DNA of 64,000 nt, taken from IMG/VR virus record IMGVR_UViG_3300037725_000018, positions 159,358 to 223,357 of that record; one strand, 5' to 3'. The notes beneath the pieces are model-generated. The model was not told where the DNA came from. It did not search any database and saw only the letters and a list, made by a program, of their open reading frames with translations. A program made the translations under genes and the position numbers. This document shows, in pieces, positions 252 through 57,637 of this stretch. Positions within the stretch are counted from its first letter, which is position 1; each line of letters opens with the position of its first letter.

Positions 252-431
252 ATGATTGTGCTTTACGAGTCTAGAAAAGAGTGGGGGGAAATCCGCGAAT
301 TTTCTGTTGGTCCCAACCCCACGATAGAGCTTCGGGGAGAAACGTGCTCGATTGAAAACTTAGGTGATAACATTACAACCGTCAAATTCAAAAAAATTAA
401 AATCAAGCGGGCCTTAAAAGAAATTTCATAA
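252..431 (+). CDS. Family A small protein
   Basis: 59 aa from internal ATG of track ORF 108..431; starts MIVLYES, basic C-terminal helix IKRALKEIS. Confidence 0.75.
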   Translation: MIVLYESRKEWGEIREFSVGPNPTIELRGETCSIENLGDNITTVKFKKIKIKRALKEIS

Positions 432-438
432 AAAAGTA

Positions 439-466
439 GGAACCGGGCTTTATTCTCCCTGTTAAA
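439..466 (+). promoter_or_regulatory. Class B ECF-like promoter for 515..796
   Basis: GGAAC-N17-GTTAAA, then AAAGAGGGAACCCTTTT 5' hairpin. Confidence 0.65.
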
Positions 467-514
467 GCAAACGGAAAAAGAGGGAACCCTTTTCACCAAC
501 GAACCCTGTTTGCT

Positions 515-796
515 ATGAACGCCACGAAAGAAGAGATCCGCGAAAAGTTTTCTCTTCCGTCTGACAGTCGGGCAAGGAAGCTTCGGGACATGTTTTCGAA
601 GCACGTCACGTATCTGGACAAGAGCCTAAACCGGGCTTGGAAGGGTCCGGTCGAAGCGGTTGTGCCGAAAGAGAAGGCTAAAGACATGCGGGAAGCAATG
701 AGCTTCATCGGTGCTCATGTGGATAAGACCGAAAGCCTTCCGGGTGGCCGCGTTCGGCTTTACAGCCGGGGCTACTACGTTCACGTTGGGGCTTAA
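515..796 (+). CDS. Hypothetical phage protein (class B cassette inserted in family A array)
   Basis: 93 aa ORF with own promoter, 5' hairpin and terminator. Confidence 0.75.
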   Translation: MNATKEEIREKFSLPSDSRARKLRDMFSKHVTYLDKSLNRAWKGPVEAVVPKEKAKDMREAMSFIGAHVDKTESLPGGRVRLYSRGYYVHVGA

Positions 797-829
797 ATGA
801 AGCGACAGCTTCCCATTCAAACCCGCAGG

Positions 830-863
830 AAGGCCCACAGGGGGAAACCTCTTGTGGGCCTTT
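830..863 (+). terminator. Intrinsic terminator-like hairpin
   Basis: AAGGCCCACAGGGGG-AAA-CCTCTTGTGGGCCTT after 515..796. Confidence 0.7.
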
Positions 864-953
864 GCCATACCCTTTTCGGTTCCGAAAACTTCTTAGAAAC
901 AATTGTGTGGACAGGCAATATCTACCAGTAGACAAAGAAAAATAACAAAGAAA

Positions 954-1175
954 ATGATTGCAGTTATAGTCTCGACGCCAAAAGACTACGGAGAAGCTTC
1001 AAAGCTTCGGATCTATCTTTCCGTTAATGACGTTTTTAAAGAAGGAAAAAAAGACTCCAAAGAAATTCAGGTTATTTCAACCCCAAATTTCACCCGAAAG
1101 CAAAACAACCAGATTGAAGAAAAGAGTTGGTTTAAAAATATAAGGTCTAAAAAAGAACAAGTAAAAAACCTTTAA
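954..1175 (+). CDS. Family A small protein
   Basis: 73 aa, MIAVIVS (internal ATG of track ORF 903..1175). Confidence 0.75.
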   Translation: MIAVIVSTPKDYGEASKLRIYLSVNDVFKEGKKDSKEIQVISTPNFTRKQNNQIEEKSWFKNIRSKKEQVKNL

Positions 1176-1179
1176 CGGC

Positions 1180-1332
1180 ATGATCATCATACTTAGCGAA
1201 ACAGAAGAAGAAGATTATAAAGTGGAAGAAGTATTTGAATATGGCCCCGCTTCTATGTCTTGGTATCTTACAGATGATGAAGTTTCGAGAGAAGAGATTA
1301 GACACATAAAAAAAGACCTAAAAACATGGTAG
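1180..1332 (+). CDS. Family A small protein
   Basis: 50 aa, MIIILSETEEE...IRHIKKDLKTW; below track cutoff, read by hand. Confidence 0.7.
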   Translation: MIIILSETEEEDYKVEEVFEYGPASMSWYLTDDEVSREEIRHIKKDLKTW

Positions 1333-1658
1333 TTTTCTTTGAATCAAAAACGGAATTTTCAAATGCGCTTTCGAACTCTACGTCCAAAAACACACTTCTT
1401 GATCTTTCGGTTCGCGTAAACGGTGTTAAGCTTTCGTACGCGGAACACGAAAAGACATACAAAAAACATGTAAGTCCCAAATCTTTAAAGTTAGCGCAGA
1501 AGCAGGGGACGGTATTTGGGCTTTCCGACGAAAAAAAGCGGCTTACTCTGTCCGGTGGAAAGCTTGTATACAATTCGGGTTCATTTGCACTTTCTTCTGC
1601 TTTGTTTTCAACGTTTAAGTCAATATCCGGCTCGCACAAAACTGGCAATATAATATAA
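1326..1658 (+). CDS. Family A small protein (VNG subfamily)
   Basis: 110 aa, MVVFFES...VRVNG. Confidence 0.75.
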   Translation: MVVFFESKTEFSNALSNSTSKNTLLDLSVRVNGVKLSYAEHEKTYKKHVSPKSLKLAQKQGTVFGLSDEKKRLTLSGGKLVYNSGSFALSSALFSTFKSISGSHKTGNII

Positions 1659-1674
1659 CACAAGTTGAAAACCC

Positions 1675-1845
1675 ATGATTATCGTTGTGTCTGAAAATGA
1701 AAGAGATCGAAGAAGTCTTGTTGGCTTTCCTCTTCACAACAAGGGAGGATGCAAGCACGTACTAAACACAAAGCAATCTAAAGCCGCAAACTTGAAAAAG
1801 TCTATCGTGGCTAGAATTGAAATTGTGAACTTGCACGGTTGGTAA
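1675..1845 (+). CDS. Family A small protein
   Basis: 56 aa, MIIVVSENE; read by hand. Confidence 0.7.
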   Translation: MIIVVSENERDRRSLVGFPLHNKGGCKHVLNTKQSKAANLKKSIVARIEIVNLHGW

Positions 1846-1851
1846 AAGAAG

Positions 1852-2031
1852 ATGATTTTCATAATGTACGAAACAAAAAAAGAGCAGAGGCGTTCTTACA
1901 TTAACGCAAATGGAGAAGGTTTTTGTTTTTTTGGTTGGGAGGGAATGAAACTTTTGCCGGAAACAAAACTTAAAAGAATTGTAATCGAAAGGTTCAGAGA
2001 AGCTAGAGTGAAAAATGGTCGTCATTTTTGA
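1852..2031 (+). CDS. Family A small protein
   Basis: 59 aa, MIFIMYETKKE; read by hand. Confidence 0.7.
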   Translation: MIFIMYETKKEQRRSYINANGEGFCFFGWEGMKLLPETKLKRIVIERFREARVKNGRHF

Positions 2032-2260
2032 AACAGAAAAAGAAGTCGTTGACGCAATTTCATATAAAAACGTTCCCGCAAAGTGGGAAGTCAACGGAAA
2101 ACCAGTAGAGGCAAAAGAGGTTATCGTAATGCCAAATAACCTAACAAAAAATCACTTTCCCGCCCACAAACAAATTGTGAAACGAAATCTTCACGAAAAG
2201 CAAGAAGACCTCTCGATTCTAAAAAAAGTTTGGTCGTTTGCAGCGTCAATCTTCAACTAA
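2015..2260 (+). CDS. Family A small protein (VNG subfamily)
   Basis: 81 aa, MVVIFETEKE...WEVNG. Confidence 0.8.
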   Translation: MVVIFETEKEVVDAISYKNVPAKWEVNGKPVEAKEVIVMPNNLTKNHFPAHKQIVKRNLHEKQEDLSILKKVWSFAASIFN

Positions 2261-2262
2261 AA

Positions 2263-2442
2263 ATGCCCATGCCCATAATCGTCGGAAAAAGAAAGGAGCT
2301 TAAAGAGGCTTACGTTATCCCAATGACACAAAGACAGTCCCGGACCTACAAATGGTTTAAGCATTCTGAAGTAAGAAATATGGGAACTAAGATGGTCAAG
2401 GAGTTAATCAGAGAAATATCATCTGAACTTAAAAGAAATTGA
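2263..2442 (+). CDS. Family A small protein (atypical start)
   Basis: 59 aa, MPMPIIVG...MVKELIREISSELKRN. Confidence 0.65.
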   Translation: MPMPIIVGKRKELKEAYVIPMTQRQSRTYKWFKHSEVRNMGTKMVKELIREISSELKRN

Positions 2443-2452
2443 AACCCAAGTT

Positions 2453-2638
2453 ATGTTCATTGTATTTGAAAGCGAAAAAGAGCGAAAAGAAGCTGTAAAC
2501 ACCGACAAATCATCGGTTCGTTCATTTTGGATTGAGGAAGAAATGATTTCAATTAAAAACGTCATGCGGGTTTACAGTTGGGACAACATGCGGCTCGGAA
2601 AGTCTCAGGCACGCAAAAAAGTAGCACATAGGCTTTAA
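2453..2638 (+). CDS. Family A small protein
   Basis: 61 aa, MFIVFESEKE. Confidence 0.8.
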   Translation: MFIVFESEKERKEAVNTDKSSVRSFWIEEEMISIKNVMRVYSWDNMRLGKSQARKKVAHRL

Positions 2639-2645
2639 TAAGGAT

Positions 2646-2831
2646 ATGCAAATTATATTCGAGACGTACCTAAAATTTCAAGCTCACTCCACGCCGGAGC
2701 TTAGTTTTTCCGGCTTCAAGGTCGGGGAAGCAAGAGACGTGCCTTCCCGTTGCATCCATGTTAAAAACACAGACACGATCCGGTCTATAAAAAAGCGGCT
2801 TCGAAAAGGGCTCGCGCAAGGCAAAAATTGA
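2646..2831 (+). CDS. Family A small protein
   Basis: 61 aa, MQIIFET...IRSIKKRLRKGL. Confidence 0.8.
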   Translation: MQIIFETYLKFQAHSTPELSFSGFKVGEARDVPSRCIHVKNTDTIRSIKKRLRKGLAQGKN

Positions 2832-2919
2832 CTTCCATATCGAGACCGGGTAGAGAAACGATTTCAAAAGACCTACCCCCCTTCAAATAACAAGTTCAAT
2901 TGACCCCCCCCCCTTAAGG

Positions 2920-3081
2920 ATGGTTTTGATTGCACATTCGCATAAAGAACTTCAAATTGCAGTTAGAATGTCACACGACCTTCTTCTTGTTCACGATTCG
3001 GTTTTCTTTCCCCGCTCTTCATACTGGATTCGAAACAAAGAAAATATGCATCGGTTCATAAAAAGTGATTTGAAAGTGTAA
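2920..3081 (+). CDS. Family A small protein
   Basis: 53 aa, MVLIAHSHKE...HRFIKSDLKV; read by hand. Confidence 0.65.
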   Translation: MVLIAHSHKELQIAVRMSHDLLLVHDSVFFPRSSYWIRNKENMHRFIKSDLKV

Positions 3082-3098
3082 AGATTAGTAGTAACATC

Positions 3099-3308
3099 AT
3101 GGTTGTTGTATATACAAAGAAAACATTAAGGAAGATAGAATCAAAGGTCGTGGAAAAGTTTTTAGAAGAAGATGAGGACGCTTTTATTATGCCAGTGGAG
3201 CTTCCGGTGTTGAACTACAAGACGCAGCGGAGCATTGTCCAAAACGCGATTCAGTCTACGTCGTGGGAAGAATACACAAACCCTGAAATGCGACCTCAAA
3301 ACATATGA
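3099..3308 (+). CDS. Family A small protein
   Basis: 69 aa, MVVVYTK. Confidence 0.75.
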   Translation: MVVVYTKKTLRKIESKVVEKFLEEDEDAFIMPVELPVLNYKTQRSIVQNAIQSTSWEEYTNPEMRPQNI

Positions 3309-3487
3309 TCATTATCCTTCCAGAAAACGAAAAAGAACACGGGGCAGCTCTTTGGCGTCGGTGGGACAAAAATCCCAAGATACTTGTCCTTCCATACCGA
3401 ATGTCAAGTTTTCAAGGAGAAGGTGGGGCAGCCGTTTTCGGGAGGGTAAGGTTTCACGTAAAAGACAAACTAAGTAAAAAAGCATGA
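3305..3487 (+). CDS. Family A small protein
   Basis: 60 aa, MIIILPENEKE; ATGA overlap with upstream gene. Confidence 0.8.
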   Translation: MIIILPENEKEHGAALWRRWDKNPKILVLPYRMSSFQGEGGAAVFGRVRFHVKDKLSKKA

Positions 3488-3678
3488 TGGTTTTGATCTT
3501 TCAAGATGAAGAGTAAAGAAGTAAGGTTCTTGAGCAGCCCGGAGCAACCTTTTTTTCAAAAGTCAAATGCCACGACAAGAACATTAGAATTAAAGAAACG
3601 TGTGAATTTCTTCAAGGCAGGCTAAGAAACTCTAAAAAGCTGTCTAAACTTTTGAGGCTAAAAATTAAAACGGCTTAA
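3484..3678 (+). pseudogene. Family A member with in-frame stop
   Basis: MMVLIFQDEE*RSKVLEQ...KLLRLKIKTA*; single TAA at 3514-3516, frame otherwise open to 3678. Confidence 0.65.
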
Positions 3679-3686
3679 TAGAAGAA

Positions 3687-3881
3687 ATGCAAATCATCTT
3701 CAACGACATAGACGAAATCAAATCGTGCATCGAAGAGTCAATATATGCCAACTCGAAAACGCGCACCCTTAGAGGAACAAATGTTTCCATAAACGTTTGG
3801 GACATGTGGCACACCGATTATGTGCGAGCTAATGGAGCAGAGGTTATAAAAAAAGTTAGATCCAAATTGAAAGAAGAATGA
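3687..3881 (+). CDS. Family A small protein
   Basis: 64 aa, MQIIFNDIDE...VIKKVRSKLKEE. Confidence 0.8.
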   Translation: MQIIFNDIDEIKSCIEESIYANSKTRTLRGTNVSINVWDMWHTDYVRANGAEVIKKVRSKLKEE

Positions 3882-4093
3882 TTATATACTTCGAACGTGG
3901 CGAAAAACAAAAAAGCCACCTGCGCGGCCTTTTTGGAAGGCAAAAGAAAACAGACCTTTCCTTCCACTTCGGAAAGATTGAAGACACAGACTGCTATTGG
4001 TATAACATTTCCGGAAACACAAAACGAAAAAGACCGGGTGAAGGTCTTAGAAGCAGAGAGCACTTAAAATTCATAACCGAAATTGCAATTTGA
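3878..4093 (+). CDS. Family A small protein
   Basis: 71 aa, MIIYFER; ATGA overlap. Confidence 0.8.
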   Translation: MIIYFERGEKQKSHLRGLFGRQKKTDLSFHFGKIEDTDCYWYNISGNTKRKRPGEGLRSREHLKFITEIAI

Positions 4094-4100
4094 AAACCCC

Positions 4101-4286
4101 ATGCATATACTTTTTGAGGACACACGCGAATTTAAAAAATACGACGGGACGTTTTATTACTTCAACGGTGGGCCGGAAATTTACGCGCATGAAGCAAGTG
4201 TTTTGACATACAGACGCAAAAAACTTACATTAGACAAACAAAAAAGAAAGCGCGTAAAAAAGAGGCTCAAAAAAAACATCGCATAA
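4101..4286 (+). CDS. Family A small protein
   Basis: 61 aa, MHILFEDTRE...RVKKRLKKNIA. Confidence 0.75.
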   Translation: MHILFEDTREFKKYDGTFYYFNGGPEIYAHEASVLTYRRKKLTLDKQKRKRVKKRLKKNIA

Positions 4287-4305
4287 CGGCGGCAGCAGGC
4301 AAAAA

Positions 4306-4491
4306 ATGGTTATTATAGTATCGGAAGAAAACACAAAACAAAAAACGTGGACGTTTTACGATAAAAATTTTTTTTCAGATCACAAGACGTGGTTTATCCC
4401 CACGGAGTCTTATGAAATAGAGCAAGGAGAAAGGTTCCCAAGCGTCCGGAGAAAAGCGAATACATCCCATATCATCAAGTCTCTTTCTTAA
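4306..4491 (+). CDS. Family A small protein
   Basis: 61 aa, MVIIVSEE. Confidence 0.8.
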   Translation: MVIIVSEENTKQKTWTFYDKNFFSDHKTWFIPTESYEIEQGERFPSVRRKANTSHIIKSLS

Positions 4492-4495
4492 ACCA

Positions 4496-4663
4496 GTGAT
4501 TATAGCAATTCCAGAATCCAAATTTGAGTGGCAAGTTTTCTATCAAGACTTACCTTTTAAAGATTTAAAAGTTGTCCCGGAACCCCGAATTTACGATAAC
4601 TACATAGAAATGTCAAGAAAAAGAACGGTTCTTTCGATAATAAAGGAACAAACAACTTCTTGA
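4496..4663 (+). CDS. Family A small protein (GTG start)
   Basis: 55 aa, MIIAIPES; read by hand. Confidence 0.65.
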   Translation: MIIAIPESKFEWQVFYQDLPFKDLKVVPEPRIYDNYIEMSRKRTVLSIIKEQTTS

Positions 4664-4665
4664 AA

Positions 4666-4725
4666 ATGATCATCACGATTCCAGCGGAGAATAATAAAGA
4701 AAGAGAAAAATGGGAATGCTTGTAA
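4666..4725 (+). pseudogene. Truncated family A stub
   Basis: 19 aa MIITIPAENNKEREKWECL*, overlapped by next member. Confidence 0.5.
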
Positions 4726-4892
4726 TCTTTGAAAATTTTGAAGAAATGGACAAAGTTTCAAAACCGAAGGGAAAGTACGAGCTTGTCGGGGAAGCAAAAG
4801 TCCCCGCGTTCAACGTCCACGTCAAAAGAAACTTCAAACGCCCAAGCGTGTTTAGAAGAGAAATGAAAATAGCTGTGTTCTCTAAGTTGTAA
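4716..4892 (+). CDS. Family A small protein
   Basis: 58 aa, MLVIFENFEE. Confidence 0.75.
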   Translation: MLVIFENFEEMDKVSKPKGKYELVGEAKVPAFNVHVKRNFKRPSVFRREMKIAVFSKL

Positions 4893-5431
4893 GAGCAAAA
4901 GCAATAAGACAGCCATCCCGACCACTTTTCCTTGGACATGATACAGACAAAGAGTATTACAACATCCGGTCACACAAACCCGAAAGCGGTTTATTAGTAG
5001 GTGGTTTGCATATAAACGGGGAAAAGCTTTCTAGCCATTGGATATATGTCAGGTGAGTGAATGGAAGAAAGCCCCACACAAGGCAAATAAAACCTCACGT
5101 GAGGTAAAATATGGTTTTTATATTGAGACCGGGGCGAAAACCATTTCATTTTTACCGGGGGTACCGATTATAGCAAGTTATTTTTACCCCCACCCCCCTG
5201 TAGAATGTACACAGCCTTGTAGTAGATGGTAGAATGTACATGTGAATTCAAAAAGCCGTTTCAAAACGAAATGCAAAAGCTTCAATTCAAGACAAAGCAC
5301 ATGTAGTTTTTACCGTTTGCAGTTTTGGCATGGAATTTGCCTTCTGCGTCAAAACAAGACGTGTAGCTTTTACAAGGGAGGTGGGCGTTGGCATACAGTT
5401 TGCTTTAAAAAACCATAAACAGATAATTGGC

Positions 5432-5593
5432 ATGATTGTTGTTATCGAAAGAAGAGAAGACATAAACGGCTCCAGCCTTAAATTTTTTGATTCTGAAATA
5501 AGGCTAAAAGTAGGCAGGGCAGTTGTTCGTAGGTGGTGCCCGTCTGGGTGGCCTTTACGATACAAAAGAGAGTACATCCGAAAGCATATTTGA
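5432..5593 (+). CDS. Family A small protein
   Basis: 53 aa, MIVVIER...REYIRKHI (internal ATG of 5330..5593). Confidence 0.7.
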   Translation: MIVVIERREDINGSSLKFFDSEIRLKVGRAVVRRWCPSGWPLRYKREYIRKHI

Positions 5594-5612
5594 AAACCAG
5601 TTGAAAAAAGAT

Positions 5613-5786
5613 ATGATCGTTATCCTTGTTGAAGAGAAGGCCAATTCTTTTAGCGTCGAAGACTTTGAAAAAGAAGTTGCAGTTATCCCAAGTGCAAAGG
5701 CGTACGTCTCTCTTTCGGTTCTTTCAAATGTTCAAGGGCTAAAGATGCGGAGGCGACATGTGGATAATGCCATTCGAAAGCTTTAA
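5613..5786 (+). CDS. Family A small protein
   Basis: 57 aa, MIVILVEE (internal ATG of 5523..5786). Confidence 0.7.
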   Translation: MIVILVEEKANSFSVEDFEKEVAVIPSAKAYVSLSVLSNVQGLKMRRRHVDNAIRKL

Positions 5787-6827: not shown

Positions 6828-6867
6828 GAGCTTCGGTGGTTTTTGTTTTCTTTCCCTGTGCAACCTT

Positions 6868-6895
6868 GTAAACCCACAGCCTACGAGTATGTTTC
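6868..6895 (-). promoter_or_regulatory. Class B ECF-like promoter
   Basis: GAAAC-N17-GTTTAC, with a TTCA box 11 nt upstream. Confidence 0.6.
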
Positions 6896-7153: not shown

Positions 7154-7199
7154 TTGTTTCTTTTGTCTTTGTGAACAGGTTCTCTTTTCTAAGCCACTA

Positions 7200-7220
7200 C
7201 AACAACAACAACAACAACAA
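7200..7220. repeat. (CAA)7 microsatellite in promoter region
   Basis: Seven perfect CAA units. Confidence 0.9.
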
Positions 7221-7289
7221 ACAAAAGGGAAGGGGAACTGCTCCCCTTCCCGTGTGAAGATTTGTTTAACTAGTGAAACTTAGCTTCAG

Positions 7290-7484
7290 TTAAGAAGAAG
7301 ACTTAGGGTAGATGATTTCCGAACCAACAGTTCGGGCGTCTTCGTCTTCGTAGCGGTAGAGAACTTCCGCGTCTTCCCCAAGACGCTTTGCGTGGTTTAT
7401 AGCCTCTACCTCCGAAAGATAAAACGCGGTGTCCGGGCCGTAGTTTCCATCGGGGGAAACAAGGTATTCTTCTGAAATCGTCAT
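7290..7484 (-). CDS. Small acidic hypothetical protein
   Basis: 64 aa MTISEEYL... Confidence 0.7.
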   Translation of the reverse strand: MTISEEYLVSPDGNYGPDTAFYLSEVEAINHAKRLGEDAEVLYRYEDEDARTVGSEIIYPKSSS

Positions 7485-7537
7485 ATCGGTTTTTGTTGTT
7501 AACTGTCTGTCTTGAAGCTTTGAGTTTCCTGTTAACC

Positions 7538-7819
7538 TCACACACTTGCCCAATCGGGATCTTCCCCTTCACGGGTAATGTCTTCGGCAGAAAAGCTTCG
7601 GACCCGGTGAGGAAAGAAATACACCTTCATATTTTCCCCATCGATAGAAGCGACGTATCCACCACTTCCTTCGGTGGCCTTGTCAAGTTGACGCCGCACC
7701 TCGTAGGATTGGGGAGTGTCGTCAAACTCGACGGTAATGGTTCCTTCTTCCTCAAGCTGGTGCCAGAACTCTTCAGTTGCCGGGTGCGGGTCTTCAACGT
7801 GAACGTGAATGTTATCCAT
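7538..7819 (-). CDS. Acidic hypothetical protein (class B)
   Basis: 93 aa MDNIHVHVED... Confidence 0.75.
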   Translation of the reverse strand: MDNIHVHVEDPHPATEEFWHQLEEEGTITVEFDDTPQSYEVRRQLDKATEGSGGYVASIDGENMKVYFFPHRVRSFSAEDITREGEDPDWASV

Positions 7820-7870
7820 AGGGTTAAGTGTTTGGGATGTTGCGGATTGTCTGCCGAAAAATGCGTGTGC

Positions 7871-7898
7871 TTAAAAAGGTGTTGGAAGATGAAGTTCC
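7871..7898 (-). promoter_or_regulatory. Class B ECF-like promoter
   Basis: GGAAC-N17-TTTTAA preceded by four TTCAC boxes (7898-7933). Confidence 0.6.
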
Positions 7899-8166
7899 GT
7901 GAAGCTTGTGTGAAGTGTGAATACTCTGTGAAGAGGGAACACTTTGTTGGTTTGAAGGTTTAAGTTAGTGCAGGGGGAGGAATATCTTTTTTTGCGTAAG
8001 TAGATTCTGTGAAGTGGAATGAATATTGCTTCGGTAGCAAATTCCATTCCAACCCTTCCGGCAGGTGTTCATTCAATATTGATTTATGTTTCCTGTAGAG
8101 ACTCAAGTAAACTTATTTTAGCCCCCAACCCTCTTAGACGCCGTTGAACGGGCTTTGGGCTTTTAT

Positions 8167-8192
8167 TTGAATATTGAATATTGAATATTGAA
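8167..8192. repeat. TTGAATA tandem heptamer repeat
   Basis: ttgaata x3 plus ttgaa in a gene-free interval. Confidence 0.85.
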
Positions 8193-8596
8193 CGCCAAGT
8201 GCCAACCAACCTGCCTTCAGCGGCTACAGACGTAGATTCTATGTTTCTCGCTCGGGGTTTGGTAAACTTATTTATTGTTGGAACGGGTTTTGCTACCGTA
8301 GACATACAATAACACATCAAATACTATGCCACACCCCAAGGCACATAGATCGCCTCTAAGCGGTTTAAGTGTTTGTAGGTATGTGGGGCAAGGCCATGTG
8401 GCGAAATCCACGCACACACGCGCACGTGCGCCCGTGAGGCTTGTCTTGATGTTAGCGGTGCAACGCTGTCCCCGCGTCTTTTGACACACGCTCCCTTGTG
8501 AGCTTAGGGACCTAAGTATGAGAAAAGATGCGGGGACGCTTTTCACGTGTCCCCGTTGACAGACGCCGAAGTTTTTTGATACACATTTGCCGGGTG

Positions 8597-8625
8597 GGAA
8601 CAAACTTATAGTTTCCCCCGTTTTA
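8597..8625 (+). promoter_or_regulatory. Candidate promoter for family A array 2
   Basis: GGAAC-N18-GTTTTA within a hairpin, 13 nt before ATG 8639. Confidence 0.45.
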
Positions 8626-8638
8626 GCGCCAAAAAAAG

Positions 8639-8812
8639 ATGATCGTCGTTATAGACAAAAAAGAAAGAGAAGACTTCGCTGCAACCAAGTTTCACAAGTT
8701 CGTAAACGTCCCTCCGGGTATGAGAAAAGACGTGGGGTGTCTTCATAACTTAGAAGACGGGTCCGGGCACCTTCTTCGGTTTGCAAAAGTTTTAGTCAAG
8801 TCTTACTTGTGA
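8639..8812 (+). CDS. Family A small protein
   Basis: 57 aa, MIVVIDKKERE; read by hand. Confidence 0.7.
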   Translation: MIVVIDKKEREDFAATKFHKFVNVPPGMRKDVGCLHNLEDGSGHLLRFAKVLVKSYL

Positions 8813-8886
8813 AAGAAAAAGCTGACGTGCGTGGTCCCCGTATACAATTTTTATTAGCCAATGCCAATGTCAATTTTTATCCGTTT

Positions 8887-9099
8887 ATGGTTGTTCTTAT
8901 TGAAACAAAAACAGAAGACGAAGAGTTTTACAATTACGTGTCCGGGATGCGGGTTTTGGTTTTGGGGACTTTTGAAACGGTCCCTTTATATCGAATACCG
9001 GATTTTGAAATTTTTAAGGTAGCCAAAACTGAAGGCTTCTGTGTAAAGGAGAATGGTCGGCTCACAATTCTTCATCACGGAATAGCAAAAGTGAGGTAA
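8887..9099 (+). CDS. Family A small protein, paralog of 9105..9308
   Basis: 70 aa, MVVLIET; shares FET..LY...F.....K.EG....E.GRL. Confidence 0.8.
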   Translation: MVVLIETKTEDEEFYNYVSGMRVLVLGTFETVPLYRIPDFEIFKVAKTEGFCVKENGRLTILHHGIAKVR

Positions 9100-9104
9100 A
9101 AAAG

Positions 9105-9308
9105 ATGGTTCTTGTTTTCGAAGACGAAACAGAAAAAGAAAGGTTTGACAAACAGGTGTCCGAAACGGGCGTGGGAGTGTTTGGCCTTTTTGAAACCCTT
9201 TCTTTGTATAAAGAAAAAGCATTTAAGGTTCTTCGGTTTGCCAAAAGAGAAGGGCTAATTACAAGAGAAGACGGGCGTCTCATTTTAGTTTACTATGGAG
9301 TAGAGTAA
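9105..9308 (+). CDS. Family A small protein
   Basis: 67 aa, MVLVFEDETE. Confidence 0.8.
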   Translation: MVLVFEDETEKERFDKQVSETGVGVFGLFETLSLYKEKAFKVLRFAKREGLITREDGRLILVYYGVE

Positions 9309-9324
9309 AACGTAGGGAAAAAAG

Positions 9325-9549
9325 ATGGTTATTCTTGTTGAAAACAAAAGAGAAAAAACCCCTTTGAAAAAAGCGTGTGGGGGAAGAGTTGAAGACGAAT
9401 TTGAACTTTTAAAAGAGCGGATTCTGTTGCACGCGGGGCACTCGTCTCCGATGGATTTTCTAGTGTACATCAAAAAAAGGCTCCACTCTTGCCCAAGCAC
9501 CGGAAGACTTACCTGCGACATAACGCCAATACGTAACAACAAAAAATAA
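9325..9549 (+). CDS. Family A small protein
   Basis: 74 aa, MVILVEN. Confidence 0.75.
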   Translation: MVILVENKREKTPLKKACGGRVEDEFELLKERILLHAGHSSPMDFLVYIKKRLHSCPSTGRLTCDITPIRNNKK

Positions 9550-9558
9550 CAGACAGTT

Positions 9559-9756
9559 GTGGTTGTTATCATTGAAGACTCGAAACTTGTTTCAGAAATT
9601 CAAGACTACTTCTCCGTCTGTTTAGAGGAAAATCTTGATGTGTATGAGCAGGTTTGGCTTTGCCGTGTGGATAGCAGCAAGCCGGAATATTTGCGTTTTA
9701 TGAAAAAACGCGGATTTGACAGGATAGAAGAGAACAAAAGAATGATTTTTAAGTAA
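9559..9756 (+). CDS. Family A small protein (GTG start)
   Basis: 65 aa, MVVIIEDS. Confidence 0.75.
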   Translation: MVVIIEDSKLVSEIQDYFSVCLEENLDVYEQVWLCRVDSSKPEYLRFMKKRGFDRIEENKRMIFK

Positions 9757-9808
9757 GCATACGCAAGGGAAAAATTAGCTCCTTCATCAAAACTGCGTAA
9801 AGTGTGCA

Positions 9809-9994
9809 ATGATTGTTTTCGTTGTTGAAAGCACAGAAGGCAAGTCCGCGTTTTTTGATTTGACAAACAAAAACCGGAAAAACTTTGGAAGCGGCGTAAG
9901 CGTGGTTTTCTCTCATAAGTACGTCGGCTCCGGAACGGCCCGAGAATGCGCTTTGAAAGTCAAACAAAAGATCAAAAAATCCAAGCAAAAGTAA
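9809..9994 (+). CDS. Family A small protein
   Basis: 61 aa, MIVFVVESTE. Confidence 0.8.
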   Translation: MIVFVVESTEGKSAFFDLTNKNRKNFGSGVSVVFSHKYVGSGTARECALKVKQKIKKSKQK

Positions 9995-10000
9995 TGAGCC

Positions 10001-10186
10001 GTGGTTATCCTAATAGAAAGCAAAAAAGAGGAAAAAGAGCTTAATAACTTAGTGAGGAGTTCTGGTTTTGAACTTGACTTTCTTGAAAGACTTCCTGCCT
10101 TTTGGCACGTGCCGGAACTTTTGCTGCGTGACCTGAAAACGGTAGGTTTTAAAACAGAACAAAGGCGATTAAAATTTAATCGGTAG
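10001..10186 (+). CDS. Family A small protein (GTG start)
   Basis: 61 aa, MVILIESKKE. Confidence 0.8.
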   Translation: MVILIESKKEEKELNNLVRSSGFELDFLERLPAFWHVPELLLRDLKTVGFKTEQRRLKFNR

Positions 10187-10201
10187 TAACCGAATCAGCT
10201 A

Positions 10202-10396
10202 ATGATTGTCATTTTGAAAAACATACAGGAGGGCAGGCATTTAGAAAATGTTAAGGGGGTGGGTCCCAAAAGAGAAGAGGTCGTATACGAATATAGATAT
10301 GGGCCACGCCTGCGGGTTCAAATCCTAAGAGATTGCAGAAAAGGGGCAAAAGAAGGTGGGGAGCGGCTGAAAATTCCGGGCCGAATACGTCAGTAA
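10202..10396 (+). CDS. Family A small protein, paralog of 10413..10613
   Basis: 64 aa, MIVILKN; shares R...L.D.R.G.K..G.RLK.P. Confidence 0.8.
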   Translation: MIVILKNIQEGRHLENVKGVGPKREEVVYEYRYGPRLRVQILRDCRKGAKEGGERLKIPGRIRQ

Positions 10397-10412
10397 AAAC
10401 AGATATGTAAAT

Positions 10413-10613
10413 ATGATCGTCATTGCAAATAACTTAAATGAAGACCGTTGGATAGTGGGACACCCGAATATCGAAAGAAAAGAAATTGCCTACGTTTACG
10501 TGTGGACACGGGAAGAGAGGACCCGTCTTTTAAAAGACTTCAGGCGGGGGATAAAAAAGAGTGGCAAAAGGCTAAAAATGCCCGATCACATGGAAACAAG
10601 TAAAAAATGGTAA
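10413..10613 (+). CDS. Family A small protein
   Basis: 66 aa, MIVIANN. Confidence 0.8.
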   Translation: MIVIANNLNEDRWIVGHPNIERKEIAYVYVWTREERTRLLKDFRRGIKKSGKRLKMPDHMETSKKW

Positions 10614-10624
10614 AAACGCTTCCC

Positions 10625-10816
10625 ATGATATTCATCTTCAAAGAGTTTGAGTACTCAAACAACATTGACTTCTTTAAAGAGACGATTATTTCAAGCGACG
10701 GGTTGGTAAAGTCCGGTTCTGTCGTTGCCGATTCTCCCGGAACAATCCCTCTAACAAAGAGTTCATACAAAAAAATCAAAGAATACGTCAAAACCCGGTT
10801 GTCAAACAAACAGTGA
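10625..10816 (+). CDS. Family A small protein
   Basis: 63 aa, MIFIFKE...KKIKEYVKTRL. Confidence 0.75.
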   Translation: MIFIFKEFEYSNNIDFFKETIISSDGLVKSGSVVADSPGTIPLTKSSYKKIKEYVKTRLSNKQ

Positions 10817-10998
10817 TCATCATCGAAGAAAACATGTTTGAACAGAAGCTAACGTTTCCCATTCGGCTTGCCCCCGAAGAACGAGTAAGCCGAAAAGACG
10901 CTTTCTTAAACGGGTGTATCTCTGCGCTTACTTTGCATAACCCAAGTGAAGGCTGGACGAAAAGGCGGCTTTGTTTAATCACCGAACGTTACCAATAA
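10813..10998 (+). CDS. Family A small protein (GTG start)
   Basis: 61 aa, MIIIEEN; GTGA overlap. Confidence 0.7.
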   Translation: MIIIEENMFEQKLTFPIRLAPEERVSRKDAFLNGCISALTLHNPSEGWTKRRLCLITERYQ

Positions 10999-11017
10999 CG
11001 AAACCCTTTGAAAAGAT

Positions 11018-11215
11018 ATGGTCGTTTGCTTTGAAAACGAAAATGAACTTGTTTCCAATACAACGATTCTTTTCGGGCGCAAGTCCGTAAACGGAATCAT
11101 TCTTGACCCTGAAGAAATTTGTATAGTCAAAAGACCGGATAATATCCATGCCCAAGTTGAAAAAAGCTTTTCGACCTGTCGCCTCACCTGTTTTGTAAAA
11201 AGTTCACGCACATAA
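11018..11215 (+). CDS. Family A small protein (VNG subfamily)
   Basis: 65 aa, MVVCFENENE...SVNG. Confidence 0.8.
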   Translation: MVVCFENENELVSNTTILFGRKSVNGIILDPEEICIVKRPDNIHAQVEKSFSTCRLTCFVKSSRT

Positions 11216-11226
11216 AAACCGGACTC

Positions 11227-11427
11227 ATGGTTGTCTATTTTGAAAAAAGAACGGAGTTTCTAAACCATTCACAATTCACAAATCGATTTCGAACAACAAT
11301 AACCGTTAACGGGCAGGTTCTTGTCAATTGCGAATATATCGTCTCGCCCAATAAAAAAGCGCCCCTTCAAATAAAAGAAAAGGACGTTCCTTTGTATCCG
11401 GGAACGCGCCTTGTTTTCGTTTTTTAA
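11227..11427 (+). CDS. Family A small protein (VNG subfamily)
   Basis: 66 aa, MVVYFEKRTE...TVNG. Confidence 0.8.
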   Translation: MVVYFEKRTEFLNHSQFTNRFRTTITVNGQVLVNCEYIVSPNKKAPLQIKEKDVPLYPGTRLVFVF

Positions 11428-11571: not shown

Positions 11572-12051
11572 TTACAAAAGCCTTCTTAGGGCTCGAAGAA
11601 GCGCCCCGCGAAAGTAGTTTCCGCTTTGCCGGGGGTCTCCGTCTCCGTAGGATCGGTACTTAACAAGCCCCCTACGCCGAAGTGCCCTCTTTGTTGCCGT
11701 TGGGTTTGCTGAAGTGACAAGCGGTTTGGTCGGGTCGTCTGCGTGAATGACGGTTGCGCGAATCACCTCCTTCATGGTTTCGGAAAGCTCTTCGGTGGAC
11801 TGAAGGCGTGCAAGCTCGACCATTGACTTGCAATCCTCCGGGTCCCACATCCGATACCAACCGTCCGCTAAGTTGCGTGCAGGGTTAATGTCAAGAAACT
11901 CCGCAAGCCGATCAAGAGCCTCCTTGACCTCCTTTTCGCTTATGTTAACACCATCGGCATTTAAAGCCATGTAAACGTCATGGGCGGTGAAGGCTTGCCC
12001 GTCCTCGTATTCGTTTTTCACCGTACTTGCAGTTTTCAAAATTACGTCCAT
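11572..12051 (-). CDS. Hypothetical protein, possible winged-helix DNA-binding domains
   Basis: 159 aa; FTAHDVY..L...EVKEALDRL and KRALRRRGLV patterns resemble wHTH. Confidence 0.65.
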   Translation of the reverse strand: MDVILKTASTVKNEYEDGQAFTAHDVYMALNADGVNISEKEVKEALDRLAEFLDINPARNLADGWYRMWDPEDCKSMVELARLQSTEELSETMKEVIRATVIHADDPTKPLVTSANPTATKRALRRRGLVKYRSYGDGDPRQSGNYFRGALLRALRRLL

Positions 12052-12103
12052 CGTCTCTTTTGTTTGTTTGTTGGAAAGGACTTCCCTCTCTGTTTCGTGT
12101 GCT

Positions 12104-12131
12104 TAAAATAGAAAAGCCCGTGGACAGTTCC
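12104..12131 (-). promoter_or_regulatory. Class B ECF-like promoter in hairpin
   Basis: GGAAC-N17-ATTTTA; upstream TTAAC..CTTCAC box. Confidence 0.65.
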
Positions 12132-12167
12132 ACGGGCCGTGTGAAGCGTTTGTTAACAAGTGATTTT

Positions 12168-12428
12168 TTAAGAAAGGTCCCACGTGATCGATTCAACCGC
12201 ATCAGCCTTATTTCGGACACTTTCCAAATCCGAATGCACTTGAATCATCTTTTTGCGCTGGAAGGCAAGACCGGCCTTCCCATCAATTTGAATGTACGCC
12301 ATTGCGACGTTTGCGGTTTTTTCCGGGTCGTAGTATTCGGGGTCCCCGTAAGAGTGTCTTCCTCGCTCTCGAAGCCGGGACTCGATCTCTTCTTGAATTT
12401 TCGAAAGCGCGTCTTCTACGATGCTCAT
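12168..12428 (-). CDS. Hypothetical phage protein
   Basis: 86 aa ORF. Confidence 0.75.
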   Translation of the reverse strand: MSIVEDALSKIQEEIESRLRERGRHSYGDPEYYDPEKTANVAMAYIQIDGKAGLAFQRKKMIQVHSDLESVRNKADAVESITWDLS

Positions 12429-12461
12429 GGGCTTTTGGTTTTGGTTTGTGAAAATTCGGCT

Positions 12462-12671
12462 TTAAGAGAAAGGATCTCGAAGATAGTCGTACCGGATATC
12501 GAAGTATGCCATTTTCTTCGTGTCAGTTACCCCGACGATGTTTCCGGTATCTTCGTCCTTTACGTGCCACTCGCTTAGGCTTTTTCGGACTTCAAAAGAC
12601 CGACCGTCTTCTCGTTTTGCGCGGTAGCGGCCCCGCTCGATCTTGCTTGTTTCAATTTCAAACGTGTCCAT
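12462..12671 (-). CDS. Hypothetical phage protein (class B)
   Basis: 69 aa ORF. Confidence 0.75.
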   Translation of the reverse strand: MDTFEIETSKIERGRYRAKREDGRSFEVRKSLSEWHVKDEDTGNIVGVTDTKKMAYFDIRYDYLRDPFS

Positions 12672-12724
12672 TTTTCAAGCCTTGTTTTATCGTTTGAAAA
12701 CGACCTCCCCTTTCTTGCGTGTAT

Positions 12725-12752
12725 ATAAACTGGTGGCCCACTGGACGGTTCC
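12725..12752 (-). promoter_or_regulatory. Class B ECF-like promoter in hairpin
   Basis: GGAAC-N17-GTTTAT; CTTCA 11 nt upstream. Confidence 0.7.
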
Positions 12753-12795
12753 AGTGGGCCACATGAAGATTCGGTAAAATAAAGCCCGTAGCCTG

Positions 12796-13002
12796 TCACA
12801 TCTTTCGGGAAGGGTTTCGGCTCTTTTCAAGGGTGTGCCGGGTAAACCCGTTTAGCCACCACTTTCGAAACGTTGAGCCTATCGCATACGGGCAATCGCT
12901 TACCCACCCGCCTTCCTTTTTCGCAGCATATCCTTCCTTGCGAATTTCTTCTTTTAGGTCCGAATGAGGGAGAGGCTCCATGTTTCCAACAAGGTCTTTC
13001 AT
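12796..13002 (-). CDS. Rmf/CrpP-fold-like small protein
   Basis: EGYAAKKEGGWVSDCPYAIGSTFRKWWLNGF matches the ribosome modulation factor pattern GYxA..G....CPY......R..WL.GW. Confidence 0.6.
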   Translation of the reverse strand: MKDLVGNMEPLPHSDLKEEIRKEGYAAKKEGGWVSDCPYAIGSTFRKWWLNGFTRHTLEKSRNPSRKM

Positions 13003-13043
13003 CGTCTTTTTGGGTTGGTTGGTAAAGGTCTTGTGGATTTGAT

Positions 13044-13277: not shown

Positions 13278-13311
13278 TGCGTTGGGAAGCTTTTAAGTTC
13301 AACAGGCGGCT

Positions 13312-13339: not shown

Positions 13340-13377
13340 ACCCCCCGGCGCGTTTGGCTACTTTTGATTTTGGATTA

Positions 13378-15547: not shown

Positions 15548-15748
15548 ATGATACAAGTTGTTGTGGATACAAGTGAAGAATCCGCTTGGATGCAGACGTT
15601 TTCAAAAGAGTTTCCAACTGAAGAAGTGGACTATTTTCATTCTGGTAAGGCAATGGAAGAGCTTGGGCTAGCCCCAATAGAAACCGGATATCGAATCTAC
15701 ATTTCAAATAAGCTTGAACACAGGTTTAAAGCGACAAAAAAGACATGA
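15548..15748 (+). CDS. Family A small protein
   Basis: 66 aa, MIQVVVDTSEE. Confidence 0.7.
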   Translation: MIQVVVDTSEESAWMQTFSKEFPTEEVDYFHSGKAMEELGLAPIETGYRIYISNKLEHRFKATKKT

Positions 15749-15900
15749 CGATATTGATTGAAAAACCCAATGAGGCAAACCGTTTTTTAAACTTTAAGAT
15801 ACGGTCGGGTGAACGCATGATTGCAAAACCTAGTTCCCTCAAAAACAAAATTATTGCATTGCGCCAAATCAAAGAATCTGTAAGGGCCGAAAAGAAATGA
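15745..15900 (+). CDS. Family A small protein
   Basis: 51 aa, MTILIEKPNE; ATGA overlaps at both ends; read by hand. Confidence 0.7.
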   Translation: MTILIEKPNEANRFLNFKIRSGERMIAKPSSLKNKIIALRQIKESVRAEKK

Positions 15901-16121
15901 TCATCATTGAAAGACAAAGTCAAAAACGGTGGGAAGTTACGGTTCGCTCTGCAAAAAGGGAAGTTTTTACCAAAGAAACACATTCGGAAATGGGGGGTAG
16001 AATCGAAAAAAAGTATTCCGTCAAACATCAAGACTCCAATGTAAAAAGAGTCTTGCGCCACATGCTAAATAATTACGACCACGAATACTCTTTAGTTACC
16101 GCTAGCAGCTTCTTGAATTAG
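15897..16121 (+). CDS. Family A small protein
   Basis: 74 aa, MIIIER. Confidence 0.7.
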   Translation: MIIIERQSQKRWEVTVRSAKREVFTKETHSEMGGRIEKKYSVKHQDSNVKRVLRHMLNNYDHEYSLVTASSFLN

Positions 16122-16679
16122 TTCCTTGACAAATTCAACCCGAACGCTGTCAACGCCTGTTGGAACGCCAGCTTGAGACTTGTCAACTGCAGGAACCTCT
16201 TCGGTTCCCAAAGCTGCCGGGACGTAAGCTTGAAGAATAAAGGCGATTTGCTCGTGTGGACGCCTCATGTACCGGGAATTAAAATTAATATTGTCAACGG
16301 GAACGCCAAACATCTTGAACATAATCGGGGTTCTGTTTGCGATTTCAACAGAATCGGCTAAAAGTTTTGTGTCCATTTCCCCCGTGTTGTGGTGAAGAAG
16401 GTGAATGATCTCGTGGTTTAAAGTTTGGCTGTCCCGCCACTTTGCAAGAACGATTTCCCCCTCTTTGCGATACATACCCGCAATTGTGTTCTTTTCGTTG
16501 ATTTTGTCCAAAACTTCAACGGGAATGTCTTGCCCGATTTGGTTTTCCAAGGCCGAAAGAACCTCTTTTTCACCACGAGTGAGCCCGTGCCCGTTTTTTT
16601 TCTTATCTACGAACGTGAAGAGAAAGAAAAGGGTCAAAAACGAAATCAAAAAAGTGCGTGAAATTTTCATTGGCTTCAT
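16092..16679 (-). CDS. Membrane-anchored/secreted HExxH zinc metallopeptidase-like protein
   Basis: N-terminal hydrophobic segment (FLISFLTLFFLFTFV); TLNHEIIH motif; downstream HEQIA candidate third ligand. Confidence 0.7.
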   Translation of the reverse strand: MKPMKISRTFLISFLTLFFLFTFVDKKKNGHGLTRGEKEVLSALENQIGQDIPVEVLDKINEKNTIAGMYRKEGEIVLAKWRDSQTLNHEIIHLLHHNTGEMDTKLLADSVEIANRTPIMFKMFGVPVDNINFNSRYMRRPHEQIAFILQAYVPAALGTEEVPAVDKSQAGVPTGVDSVRVEFVKELIQEAASGN

Positions 16680-16724
16680 TTTTGCTGTTTGTGGAAAGAA
16701 ACTTTCTTTTGTCGTCTTTGTTAC

Positions 16725-16752
16725 GTGAATAGACAAACGACGAAAAGGTTTC
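16725..16752 (-). promoter_or_regulatory. Class B ECF-like promoter for the metallopeptidase
   Basis: GAAAC-N17-ATTCAC followed by AAAGAAAGTTTCTTT 5' hairpin. Confidence 0.55.
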
Positions 16753-16764
16753 TTTTTTGCTTAT

Positions 16765-16941
16765 ATGATTTTTATTATCACCGAAGACCGAAACGAGTTT
16801 TTCGAAGCTTGTGGCATGTACCAACACAGGCACGCGCCAAGTGCTCTTGCCCAAGTGCTTCCGGACCACGTTGAAATCGCTTCCCTGCCATACAGAAACA
16901 AGTTTGCAATCAAAAAACACCTTTCAAAAACCCCAAAGTAA
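16765..16941 (+). CDS. Family A small protein
   Basis: 58 aa, MIFIITEDRNE...FAIKKHLSK; read by hand. Confidence 0.7.
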   Translation: MIFIITEDRNEFFEACGMYQHRHAPSALAQVLPDHVEIASLPYRNKFAIKKHLSKTPK

Positions 16942-16943
16942 AC

Positions 16944-17228
16944 ATGTACGTAATAATTAGCGCCGAAGAAAAACGTAAGCTTTCAAAACAAAACTTCCTA
17001 TCCGGCCTAGAGTGGAGGCTGGACGTGCCTTCCTCAATTCGCGTAGTAAGAAATTTAAAGATAAACAGACAAAGAATCAAAGAAACCAAATCTGACATAG
17101 CAAGGCATTACCTCCGAAAAATGAAAACAGATAGAACTTGGATCACCGGAAGTTTAAAGGACAAAGAGGCGCTAGAGATCATTCAAGGCAAAAAGTTAAA
17201 AGACTGTCATGATCATTATTTTGTATAG
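16944..17228 (+). CDS. Family A small protein
   Basis: 94 aa, MYVIISAEE. Confidence 0.75.
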   Translation: MYVIISAEEKRKLSKQNFLSGLEWRLDVPSSIRVVRNLKINRQRIKETKSDIARHYLRKMKTDRTWITGSLKDKEALEIIQGKKLKDCHDHYFV

Positions 17229-17367
17229 AACAAATAAAGAGTGGGACGGAGTTCACGACGCTTTTAACACAGAAGCCTCTGACCCTTCCGAAGACTTGTT
17301 TATCATTCCGGATGAAAAAAGCCACTACTTTACCGCGAAACTAATTTTTGGCACAAAAAACGCTTGA
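17209..17367 (+). CDS. Family A small protein
   Basis: 52 aa, MIIILYRTNKE; read by hand. Confidence 0.65.
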   Translation: MIIILYRTNKEWDGVHDAFNTEASDPSEDLFIIPDEKSHYFTAKLIFGTKNA

Positions 17368-56825: not shown

Positions 56826-57269
56826 CTACTCTACAACGCGGTCAATTTGATCTGTAAGACTTGTTGTGTACACAAACGATTGAATACCGGACATGTTTCG
56901 AAGATCAAATGTCCGGTACGGATTTTGCTCGAACCCAAAACTTACAATCACGCTATCGTAAAAAGACCTTGGGTTTGGAATAAAGAGGTCCAAAACCGGA
57001 AGAAAACCTTCAAGCGTGTCTGAAACGTTGTCCGGTAAAAACCCAAACGCGGTCAAGACCAAATCTAAAATCTCTTGCTCTGAAATATACTTTATATCAA
57101 TTCCGTGAAGTTTAGAATCGACGTTTTTTTCAAGCACAATCACCTTTCTAGTCTCGGTTTTTCCAGAGGATTTCAAATACTTAAACTCAATAAAGTCCCC
57201 GGACTCCACGTCTTGAAGAACCGTTGGTGATTTATCTGATATTTGATCTTCGTGGTCAAATTCTCTCAT
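56826..57269 (-). CDS. Hypothetical protein (SH3/WYL-like N-terminus, YRTF C-terminal motif)
   Basis: IEFKY..SG..ETRKVIVL...LHGID...YRTFDLRNM. Confidence 0.6.
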   Translation of the reverse strand: MREFDHEDQISDKSPTVLQDVESGDFIEFKYLKSSGKTETRKVIVLEKNVDSKLHGIDIKYISEQEILDLVLTAFGFLPDNVSDTLEGFLPVLDLFIPNPRSFYDSVIVSFGFEQNPYRTFDLRNMSGIQSFVYTTSLTDQIDRVVE

Positions 57270-57460
57270 AGCTCTTTAACACGCCTTTCAAGTTTTTTTT
57301 CAAAGCATCCCGGATATGAAAAAACAGAGTCTTGACTAGTTATTTCACAAGACTTCACGTTAAGAAGAGCCGCTCGAACCGAATCGGTTACTAAATCGGA
57401 CGCATACTTGTCATACTTTTCATTGGACTCTCTGTTGCGGTCAAAAAATATGATAACCAT
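57266..57460 (-). CDS. Family A small protein (dispersed)
   Basis: 64 aa, MVIIFFDRNRE. Confidence 0.75.
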   Translation of the reverse strand: MVIIFFDRNRESNEKYDKYASDLVTDSVRAALLNVKSCEITSQDSVFSYPGCFEKKLERRVKEL

Positions 57461-57463
57461 TTT

Positions 57464-57637
57464 TTAAAAACTGTTTGTGATTATACCCTTCACTTTTTTA
57501 GCGCCCCATGAAGGAAGGATAACCTCGTCTTCTACGGAGTCTAACAGATGATCTTCGCTATATACAAATTCAGAAGAGTAAAAGTTAACCAATCCTTCAT
57601 GGAGCTTTTCATCTTTTCTTGAAAATATGATTACCAT
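57464..57637 (-). CDS. Family A small protein (dispersed)
   Basis: 57 aa, MVIIFSRKDE...VKGIITNSF; read by hand. Confidence 0.7.
   Translation of the reverse strand: MVIIFSRKDEKLHEGLVNFYSSEFVYSEDHLLDSVEDEVILPSWGAKKVKGIITNSF

Follow-up and report, generated by a model that had tools for sequence, protein, structure and literature searches.

The final 64 kb (positions 159358 to 223357; here called the window) of a 223,357-bp IMG/VR virus record that is rated complete contains, at window positions 8639 to 11427, a run of 13 small genes whose products resemble one another over a short N-terminal tag and hardly anywhere else. This run, array 2, belongs to a family of at least 47 recognizable members in an uncultured T4-like phage. 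Our results would be best explained overall by a family that turns over by birth and death and in which the tag acts as an address label, preferably as a T4-type targeting and processing leader on packaged effector proteins, a reading to which we assign a probability of about 0.35.

The 13 open reading frames (ORFs) of array 2 all lie on the plus strand, encode 57 to 74 amino acids, and are spaced by -4 to 74 nt (Table 1); the packing includes ATGA and GTGA overlaps, and the start codon is ATG in ten cases and GTG in three. An alternative genetic code was unnecessary. Every unit begins on the pattern M-[IV]-[IV]-h-h, usually followed by one Glu at residue 6 or 7 and by a second at residue 10. 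A 5-kb sister contig (L004), with 82 to 90% DNA identity to the window, carries the same array and contains 12 of the 13 units, all of them open and almost identical in length. Between the two strains, the ratio of nonsynonymous to synonymous substitution rates (dN/dS) is 0.08 to 0.54 per unit, with pooled values of 0.37 for codons 2 to 10 and 0.30 for the remainder of the gene; the most constrained unit, unit 11 (10813), has 95% amino acid identity and a dN/dS of 0.08. Because all 12 shared frames are open in the sister strain and dN/dS is well under 1, the array 2 units are protein-coding genes, and the array as a whole is best explained as a co-transcribed block of 13 of them.

Across the family the tag follows the consensus M-[IV]-[IV]-h-h-E-x-x-x-E and occupies 6 to 10 residues. 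It is conserved at the amino acid level. Synonymous codon use at residues 2 to 5 equals that of the genome, and selection on the tag therefore acts at the peptide level; a tag-type start occurs in only 1 of the 162 large ORFs of the genome, so the tag is not a general feature of initiation. The part behind the tag is constrained within its own orthologs (dN/dS of about 0.3) yet differs from unit to unit, and once the first 10 residues are cut, leave-one-out profiles score barely above shuffled sequences (mean z of 0.43, t of 2.7). The units are mostly basic (median isoelectric point of 9.3), and their C-terminal 20 residues have a mean net charge of +3.1. Selection that keeps the N-terminal tag together with a generally basic C-terminal end across the family is the best explanation for these observations. 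AlphaFold2 (AF2) modeled unit 8887 from six sequences with a mean predicted local distance difference test score (pLDDT) of 42 and unit 5613 from a 47-row family alignment with a pLDDT of 68, the latter model having two helices, no sheet, and an unpaired N-terminal segment; neither model is strong enough to serve in a fold search. Conservation this lopsided fits a linear signal, since the core of a shared fold should have left more trace. With regard to a possible frameshift origin, off-frame translations matched the post-tag sequences of other units no better than chance for the number of comparisons made.

Relatedness among units was assessed after trimming the first 8 residues, by Smith-Waterman comparison of 666 pairs and by BLASTP on the same trimmed sequences. 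An earlier, sequence-only reading of array 2 had claimed that the adjacent pairs 8887/9105 and 10202/10413 can be aligned along their whole length. The residue patterns it quoted are present as written, and the similarity is indeed significant beyond the first eight residues, both for 8887/9105 (z = 22, none of 1,000 shuffles as high; BLASTP E value of 2e-15, 24 of 58 residues, or 41%, identical) and for 10202/10413 (z = 15, again 0/1,000 shuffles; 6e-10, 15/39 identical, or 38%). No other pair stands out in the Smith-Waterman comparison. That the top two pairs of 666 are both physical neighbors has a chance probability that we estimate at roughly (34/666)^2, or ~0.003. A leave-one-out, tag-trimmed profile of 8887, 9105, 9325, 10001, and their orthologs recovered 9559 at an E value of 6.8e-5, while 9325 and 10001 were not recovered in the same test; unit 4 (9325) aligns by eye with units 2, 3, and 5 at a common G-RL end. 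By these alignments, then, the two pairs and 9559 are true paralogs beyond the N terminus. Because related units lie next to one another, growth by local duplication is indicated, as the earlier reading had proposed, and the extreme divergence between units agrees with its suggestion of rapid divergence.

Where that reading erred was in calling the duplications recent. Synonymous sites are saturated between the paralogs (proportions of synonymous differences of 0.59 for 8887/9105 and 0.81 for 10202/10413), orthologs in the sister strain differ by a dS of only 0.12 to 0.56, and both strains have the 8887/9105 pair; the duplications are therefore old. An all-against-all comparison of units at the DNA level gave no alignable pair, and we saw no ongoing high-identity amplification, the closest paralogs being only ~40% identical. 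The VNG motif said to connect the arrays is found in 4 of the 47 family members (1326, 2015, 11018, and 11227) against 0.4 expected from shuffles (P = 4e-4), at residues 24 to 31 in every carrier. These four are also the only units that start with MVVxFE, which makes the connection somewhat stronger than had been claimed. Shared ancestry of the arrays thus holds to the extent that this subtype ties arrays 1 and 2 together, but profiles built from the VNG units of one array do not detect those of the other. Likewise, the preference for true paralogy over convergent N termini is borne out for the named pairs and 9559 but not family-wide, given the near-shuffle scores of the post-tag profiles; in most units it is the tag, size, arrangement, and restriction to a single lineage that argue for common descent, not alignable post-tag sequence.

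Comparison of strains shows how units come and go. Unit 10413 is missing from L004, where 57 nt of it remain, fused in frame to the next unit; this remnant combines a start of the family type (M-V-I-V-G-N-E) with a piece similar to the final 30 nt of 10413. Because the remnant stays in place, the difference looks like a loss by internal deletion in the sister strain and not a gain in the window. The resulting region of L004 (1960-2208) holds an 82-amino-acid ORF with two nested family starts (MMMVIVGNE..., then ...MILIFKE), and this ORF appears to have arisen by deletion of most of a 10413-like unit. The two forms occur side by side in the same metagenomes; the window form is the major type, and the minor type has the joint 10372->10625. 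Unit 1 has diverged far more than its neighbors, with 48% amino acid identity and a dS of 0.81 between window positions 8639-8812 and L004 positions 209-379, as against ~90% identity for the neighboring units, which points to mosaicism by recombination or to an allele of much greater age. A second sister contig (L105; 83% identity) was compared with array 1. It carries an intact, 64-amino-acid version (2456-2650) of the unit at 3484 that is broken in the window, and it holds two units, at 3820-4026 and 4255-4449, that the window does not have. The first of these resembled unit 4716 by eye; BLASTP gave no alignment, and we do not claim it as a paralog. Also in array 1, unit 2920 has a run of ten C residues (2903-2912) seven bases ahead of its start, at a place where the sister strain differs; the run could be a slippage-prone tract. 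Taken together, the observed divergence of units, their acquisition of stops, their deletion, and the extra units of sister strains are best explained by evolution through birth and death.

About 40 family members lie in three plus-strand arrays within the first 17 kb of the window, and the remainder are scattered singly or in pairs. Three degenerate family-like ORFs, at 954-1175 (MIAVIVS), 2263-2442 (MPMPIIVG), and 16944-17228 (MYVIISAEE), were absent from the arrays as drawn in the sequence-only reading. Outside this phage the family was not found. In the nearest complete relative, a 263-kb genome whose capsid protein is 64% identical, the position-specific scoring matrix (PSSM) for family starts has no match and there is no comparable N-terminal enrichment of its own, and a DNA pattern for the tag gave 0 to 2 matches in four related virus records, the same as the control. 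Searches of Pfam-A and PHROGs with 47 sequences (38 window units and 9 sister-strain orthologs) returned no match at E<=0.001. A profile of 8887, 9105, and 9559 run against 1.84 billion protein representatives retrieved the phage's own strain variants and one spurious repeat protein, word searches with 9105, 1326, and 10813 retrieved strain variants only, and the look-alikes in the ESM Atlas were confined to unnamed viral clusters (score of 0.81). The family is thus restricted to a single lineage of this phage, an uncultured T4-like virus of 223 kb from the sediment of tidal flats.

The T4-like character of the phage gives the tag a candidate function. Its genome encodes a Gp23-family major capsid protein (PF07068, 3.7e-67) and a prohead protease of the Peptidase_S77/gp21 family (PF03420, 9e-32), the latter at 32309-33007 on the minus strand. 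In T4, the internal proteins are diverse small proteins that share a 10-residue N-terminal capsid-targeting sequence, by which they enter the prohead core, and gp21 removes this sequence at L/I-x-E (PMC9026906, PMC3012670). In the present family, [ILVMF]-x-E ending at residue 5 to 8 is found in 32 of 47 units. The cleavage site of T4 gp23, which we take to be Glu65/Ala66, aligns with a site in the capsid protein of this phage that reads V-N-E/A. The tag may accordingly resemble a targeting or processing signal, and the proteins may be packaged. On the mechanism we propose, a single partner, preferably the T4-type head-assembly machinery, would recognize the tag as an address shared by all units; the tag would play the part of the T4 capsid-targeting sequence and have a prohead-protease site (aliphatic-x-Glu) at its end, with cleavage after the Glu. 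The head would be loaded with a varied set of small basic proteins, which would be injected along with the DNA and act on the host as effectors, and the family would have grown by old local duplications followed by birth-and-death turnover. We favor, with limited confidence, a targeting and processing tag because of the lopsided conservation, the presence of the S77 protease, the V-N-E/A site, and the aliphatic-x-Glu in 32/47 units. The scheme in its complete form, a lineage-specific capsid-targeting and prohead-protease leader on a library of ~50 proteins that is packed, trimmed after Glu, injected, and diversified by duplication and loss, is rather unlikely to be right in every part, and we offer it tentatively.

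Several observations weigh against this proposal. The remaining 15 of the 47 units have no aliphatic-x-Glu, among them both members of the 10202/10413 pair, where K or N stands in place of the Glu. The leader of six residues is shorter than the 10-residue T4 sequence and bears no sequence relation to it, and we know of no precedent for the packaging of ~50 different proteins. In their layout the arrays resemble operons of small genes as found in early or accessory regions. The T4 late-promoter motif TATAAATA shows no enrichment (13 seen versus ~20 expected) and gives no indication of expression timing; the promoters of this phage are unlike those of T4. A common small fold is allowed by a weak post-tag pattern, a central hydrophobic-hydrophobic-Pro enriched over shuffles (P of about 0.01 to 0.02), and by the basic C-terminal end, which AF2 models as a helix with moderate confidence. 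Modeling of a unit in complex with the S77 prohead protease counts neither for nor against the proposal.

The main rival to a targeting tag is just such a shared mini-fold. The units would then be plain diverged paralogs in which the N-terminal strand and Glu are the best-kept core or oligomerization element of a beta-alpha-beta-alpha-like mini-domain, and they would be ordinary nonpackaged accessory proteins, produced within the cell, for host takeover or antidefense. Demonstrable paralogy between neighboring units speaks for this, as do the weak family-wide signals behind the tag (the profile scores, the hydrophobic-hydrophobic-Pro, and the basic C-terminal helix) and the tight, operon-like packing typical of accessory small genes in T4-like genomes. 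A fold would, however, have to account for some 10 conserved residues with essentially nothing conserved elsewhere, no further strand or core position being kept family-wide; AF2 found no confident fold, and the N-terminal segment is unpaired in its best model. We regard a common mini-fold as possible, if doubtful. It is improbable, by comparison, that the tag sits on unrelated cargo, with post-tag parts of independent origin that each gained the same start region by recombination or by being captured behind a start already present, so that the family as a whole would not be paralogous. Most post-tag sequences are statistically unrelated, and the internal-protein loci of T-even phages have been described in similar terms (PMC3012670). 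Even so, no unit matches a protein outside the phage lineage, leaving no outside donor visible, and the tag DNA is free at synonymous sites and so offers no long identical stretch for recombination. That one variant of the tag, MVVxFE, goes together with the internal motif VNG fits descent, and neither the off-frame nor the DNA-level comparisons reveal hidden relationships.

Very unlikely, in our judgment, is a signal at the RNA level, in which a G-poor stretch with U at the second codon position would follow the AUG and aid initiation without Shine-Dalgarno pairing, the peptide being a by-product. There is some reason to consider it: no Shine-Dalgarno sequence is found upstream of family genes or of other genes genome-wide, the leaders are A-rich, U occupies position 2 in all tag codons while G is rare at position 3, and dS is lower in codons 2 to 10 than in the rest of the gene (0.16 versus 0.36). 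Yet the rarity of such starts among the large ORFs shows that they are no general requirement for initiation, synonymous codons in the tag follow genome usage, and what is patterned is the peptide, with Ile and Val preferred to Leu and Phe and a Glu fixed at positions 6/7 and 10. Least likely by far is that the ORFs are not genes at all but chance frames in a repetitive noncoding region. They are very short and have neither database relatives nor a confident fold; nevertheless, the data contradict this reading, for all 12 shared frames are kept at 82 to 90% DNA identity under purifying dN/dS values, starts and stops are tightly packed, and the genome has 44 motif-bearing starts (PSSM score of >=8), compared with 0 when it is reversed.

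TABLE 1. Positions of array 2, its units, and associated features in the window
Feature	Position	Strand	Remarks
Array 1	252..5786	+	19 units defined, plus degenerate members 954-1175 and 2263-2442
Broken array 1 unit	3484..3676	+	MMVLIFQDEE start, TAA at codon 11 (3514-3516), downstream frame still open
Presumed control region	7820..8638		~0.8 kb without convincing ORF, between divergent - strand block and array 2
Unit 1	8639..8812	+	57 aa, MIVVID start; most strain-diverged unit
Unit 2	8887..9099	+	70 aa, MVVLIE start; paralog of unit 3; ortholog 90% identical, dN/dS 0.41
Unit 3	9105..9308	+	67 aa, MVLVFE start; paralog of unit 2
Unit 4	9325..9549	+	74 aa, MVILVE start
Unit 5	9559..9756	+	65 aa, GTG start, MVVIIE; third member of 8887/9105 subfamily
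Unit 6	9809..9994	+	61 aa, MIVFVVE start, tail rich in lysine
Unit 7	10001..10186	+	61 aa, GTG start, MVILIE
Unit 8	10202..10396	+	64 aa, MIVILK start; paralog of unit 9
Unit 9	10413..10613	+	66 aa, MIVIAN start; paralog of unit 8; missing from co-occurring sister strain
Unit 10	10625..10816	+	63 aa, MIFIFKE start
Unit 11	10813..10998	+	61 aa, MIIIEE; GTG start overlaps preceding stop
Unit 12	11018..11215	+	65 aa, MVVCFE start, VNG at residue 24
Unit 13	11227..11427	+	66 aa, MVVYFE start, VNG at residue 27
Terminator-like hairpins	11385..11419	+	End of array 2, opposite - strand terminator-like site 11383-11362; consensus scan only
Array 3	15548..17367	+	Units 15548, 15745, 15897, 16765, 17209; family-like ORF at 16944
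Two scattered members	57269..57637	-	Starts at 57460 and 57637

The presumed control region upstream of array 2 contains a short TGAATAT tandem repeat at ~8168-8192 and, near 8633 on the minus strand, one match to the Bacteroidota-type TTTG...TAnnTTTG, and its sequence differs strongly from strain to strain (joints 8493->8709 and 8738->8885). Between the plus-strand arrays lie minus-strand blocks of small ORFs (5921-7819 and 11572-15556), many of them acidic, with a G+C content of 0.47 to 0.51 versus 0.40 to 0.44 in the arrays. One of these ORFs matches phrog_6004, a family of unknown function, and the others have no match; the minus-strand block is kept in the sister strain, the window carrying ~0.5 kb extra at 12164-12694. 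A search for loci related to the flanking 159-amino-acid gene found nothing.

The phage further encodes long tail-fiber genes, an endolysin, a thymidylate synthase, and one tRNA-Arg. Its capsid protein is nearest to that of an uncultured huge phage (66% identity), followed by Microcystis phage Mel-JY01 (52%), Flavobacterium "immuto" phages (48%), and Rhodothermus phage RM378 (38%). Phage DNA was detected in tidal-flat metagenomes; none of the RNA runs searched contains the stretch. The missing Shine-Dalgarno sequences and A-rich leaders suggest that the host is probably Bacteroidota-like. Elsewhere in the window, minus-strand positions 18626-38266 are occupied by very large tail-fiber-like genes (1956, 1066, 1460, 618, 443, and 678 amino acids), some with YadA-head repeats and one with a Peptidase_S74 chaperone domain; a megablast comparison of the tail-fiber region with the phage collection found nothing.

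As a natural instance of a single label attached to many cargoes, ~50 ORFan proteins that keep only a tag of 6 to 10 residues in common are unusually clean. Should the tag serve in packaging or processing, the capsid-targeting principle of T4 would reach far beyond the T-even phages, a large repertoire of injected effectors would be indicated for an environmental jumbo phage, and a very short tag of natural origin would be at hand for loading capsids with proteins. Whatever the role of the tag, co-occurring strains that differ by whole units give a direct view of the birth and death of accessory genes in a wild phage.

One parallel is offered by the precursors of ribosomally synthesized and posttranslationally modified peptides (RiPPs) such as the prochlorosins, which are likewise encoded by many small tandem genes whose products are conserved at the N terminus and variable beyond it. 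The leader here has only 6 to 10 residues, though, the variable part has ~55 residues with no Cys/Ser/Thr-rich cores, and the ten largest minus-strand ORFs flanking arrays 1 to 3 have no recognizable domain of a RiPP modification enzyme; on the short tag and the lack of enzyme domains we rejected a RiPP precursor array. Another parallel is found in the lineage-specific tandem families of small paralogs in large DNA viruses: the multigene families (MGF) of African swine fever virus (ASFV), the gene amplifications of poxviruses ("genomic accordions"), and the hyperplastic regions of T4-like phages. Like them, the present family shows copy gain, loss, and decay between close strains together with rapid divergence. 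Its units are far shorter, nearly all similarity falls in the first 10 residues, and no high-identity amplification is seen to be under way.

The closest precedent is found in the internal proteins of T4 and other T-even phages (IPI, IPII, IPIII, and the polymorphic IP loci). There, too, a T4-type phage with a prohead protease of the gp21 family encodes small, mostly basic, otherwise unrelated proteins with a common short N-terminal leader, which ends in aliphatic-x-Glu there and carries such a site in 32 of 47 units here, from loci that vary between close relatives. The differences are that the present phage has ~50 such genes instead of three, arranged in long same-strand arrays, that its tag is unrelated in sequence and only 6 to 10 residues long, and that about one-third of the units do not have the Glu. 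In sum, tandem expansions of paralogs and leader-tagged internal proteins are both already known in large viruses, and the family described here is a lineage-restricted variant of both themes.

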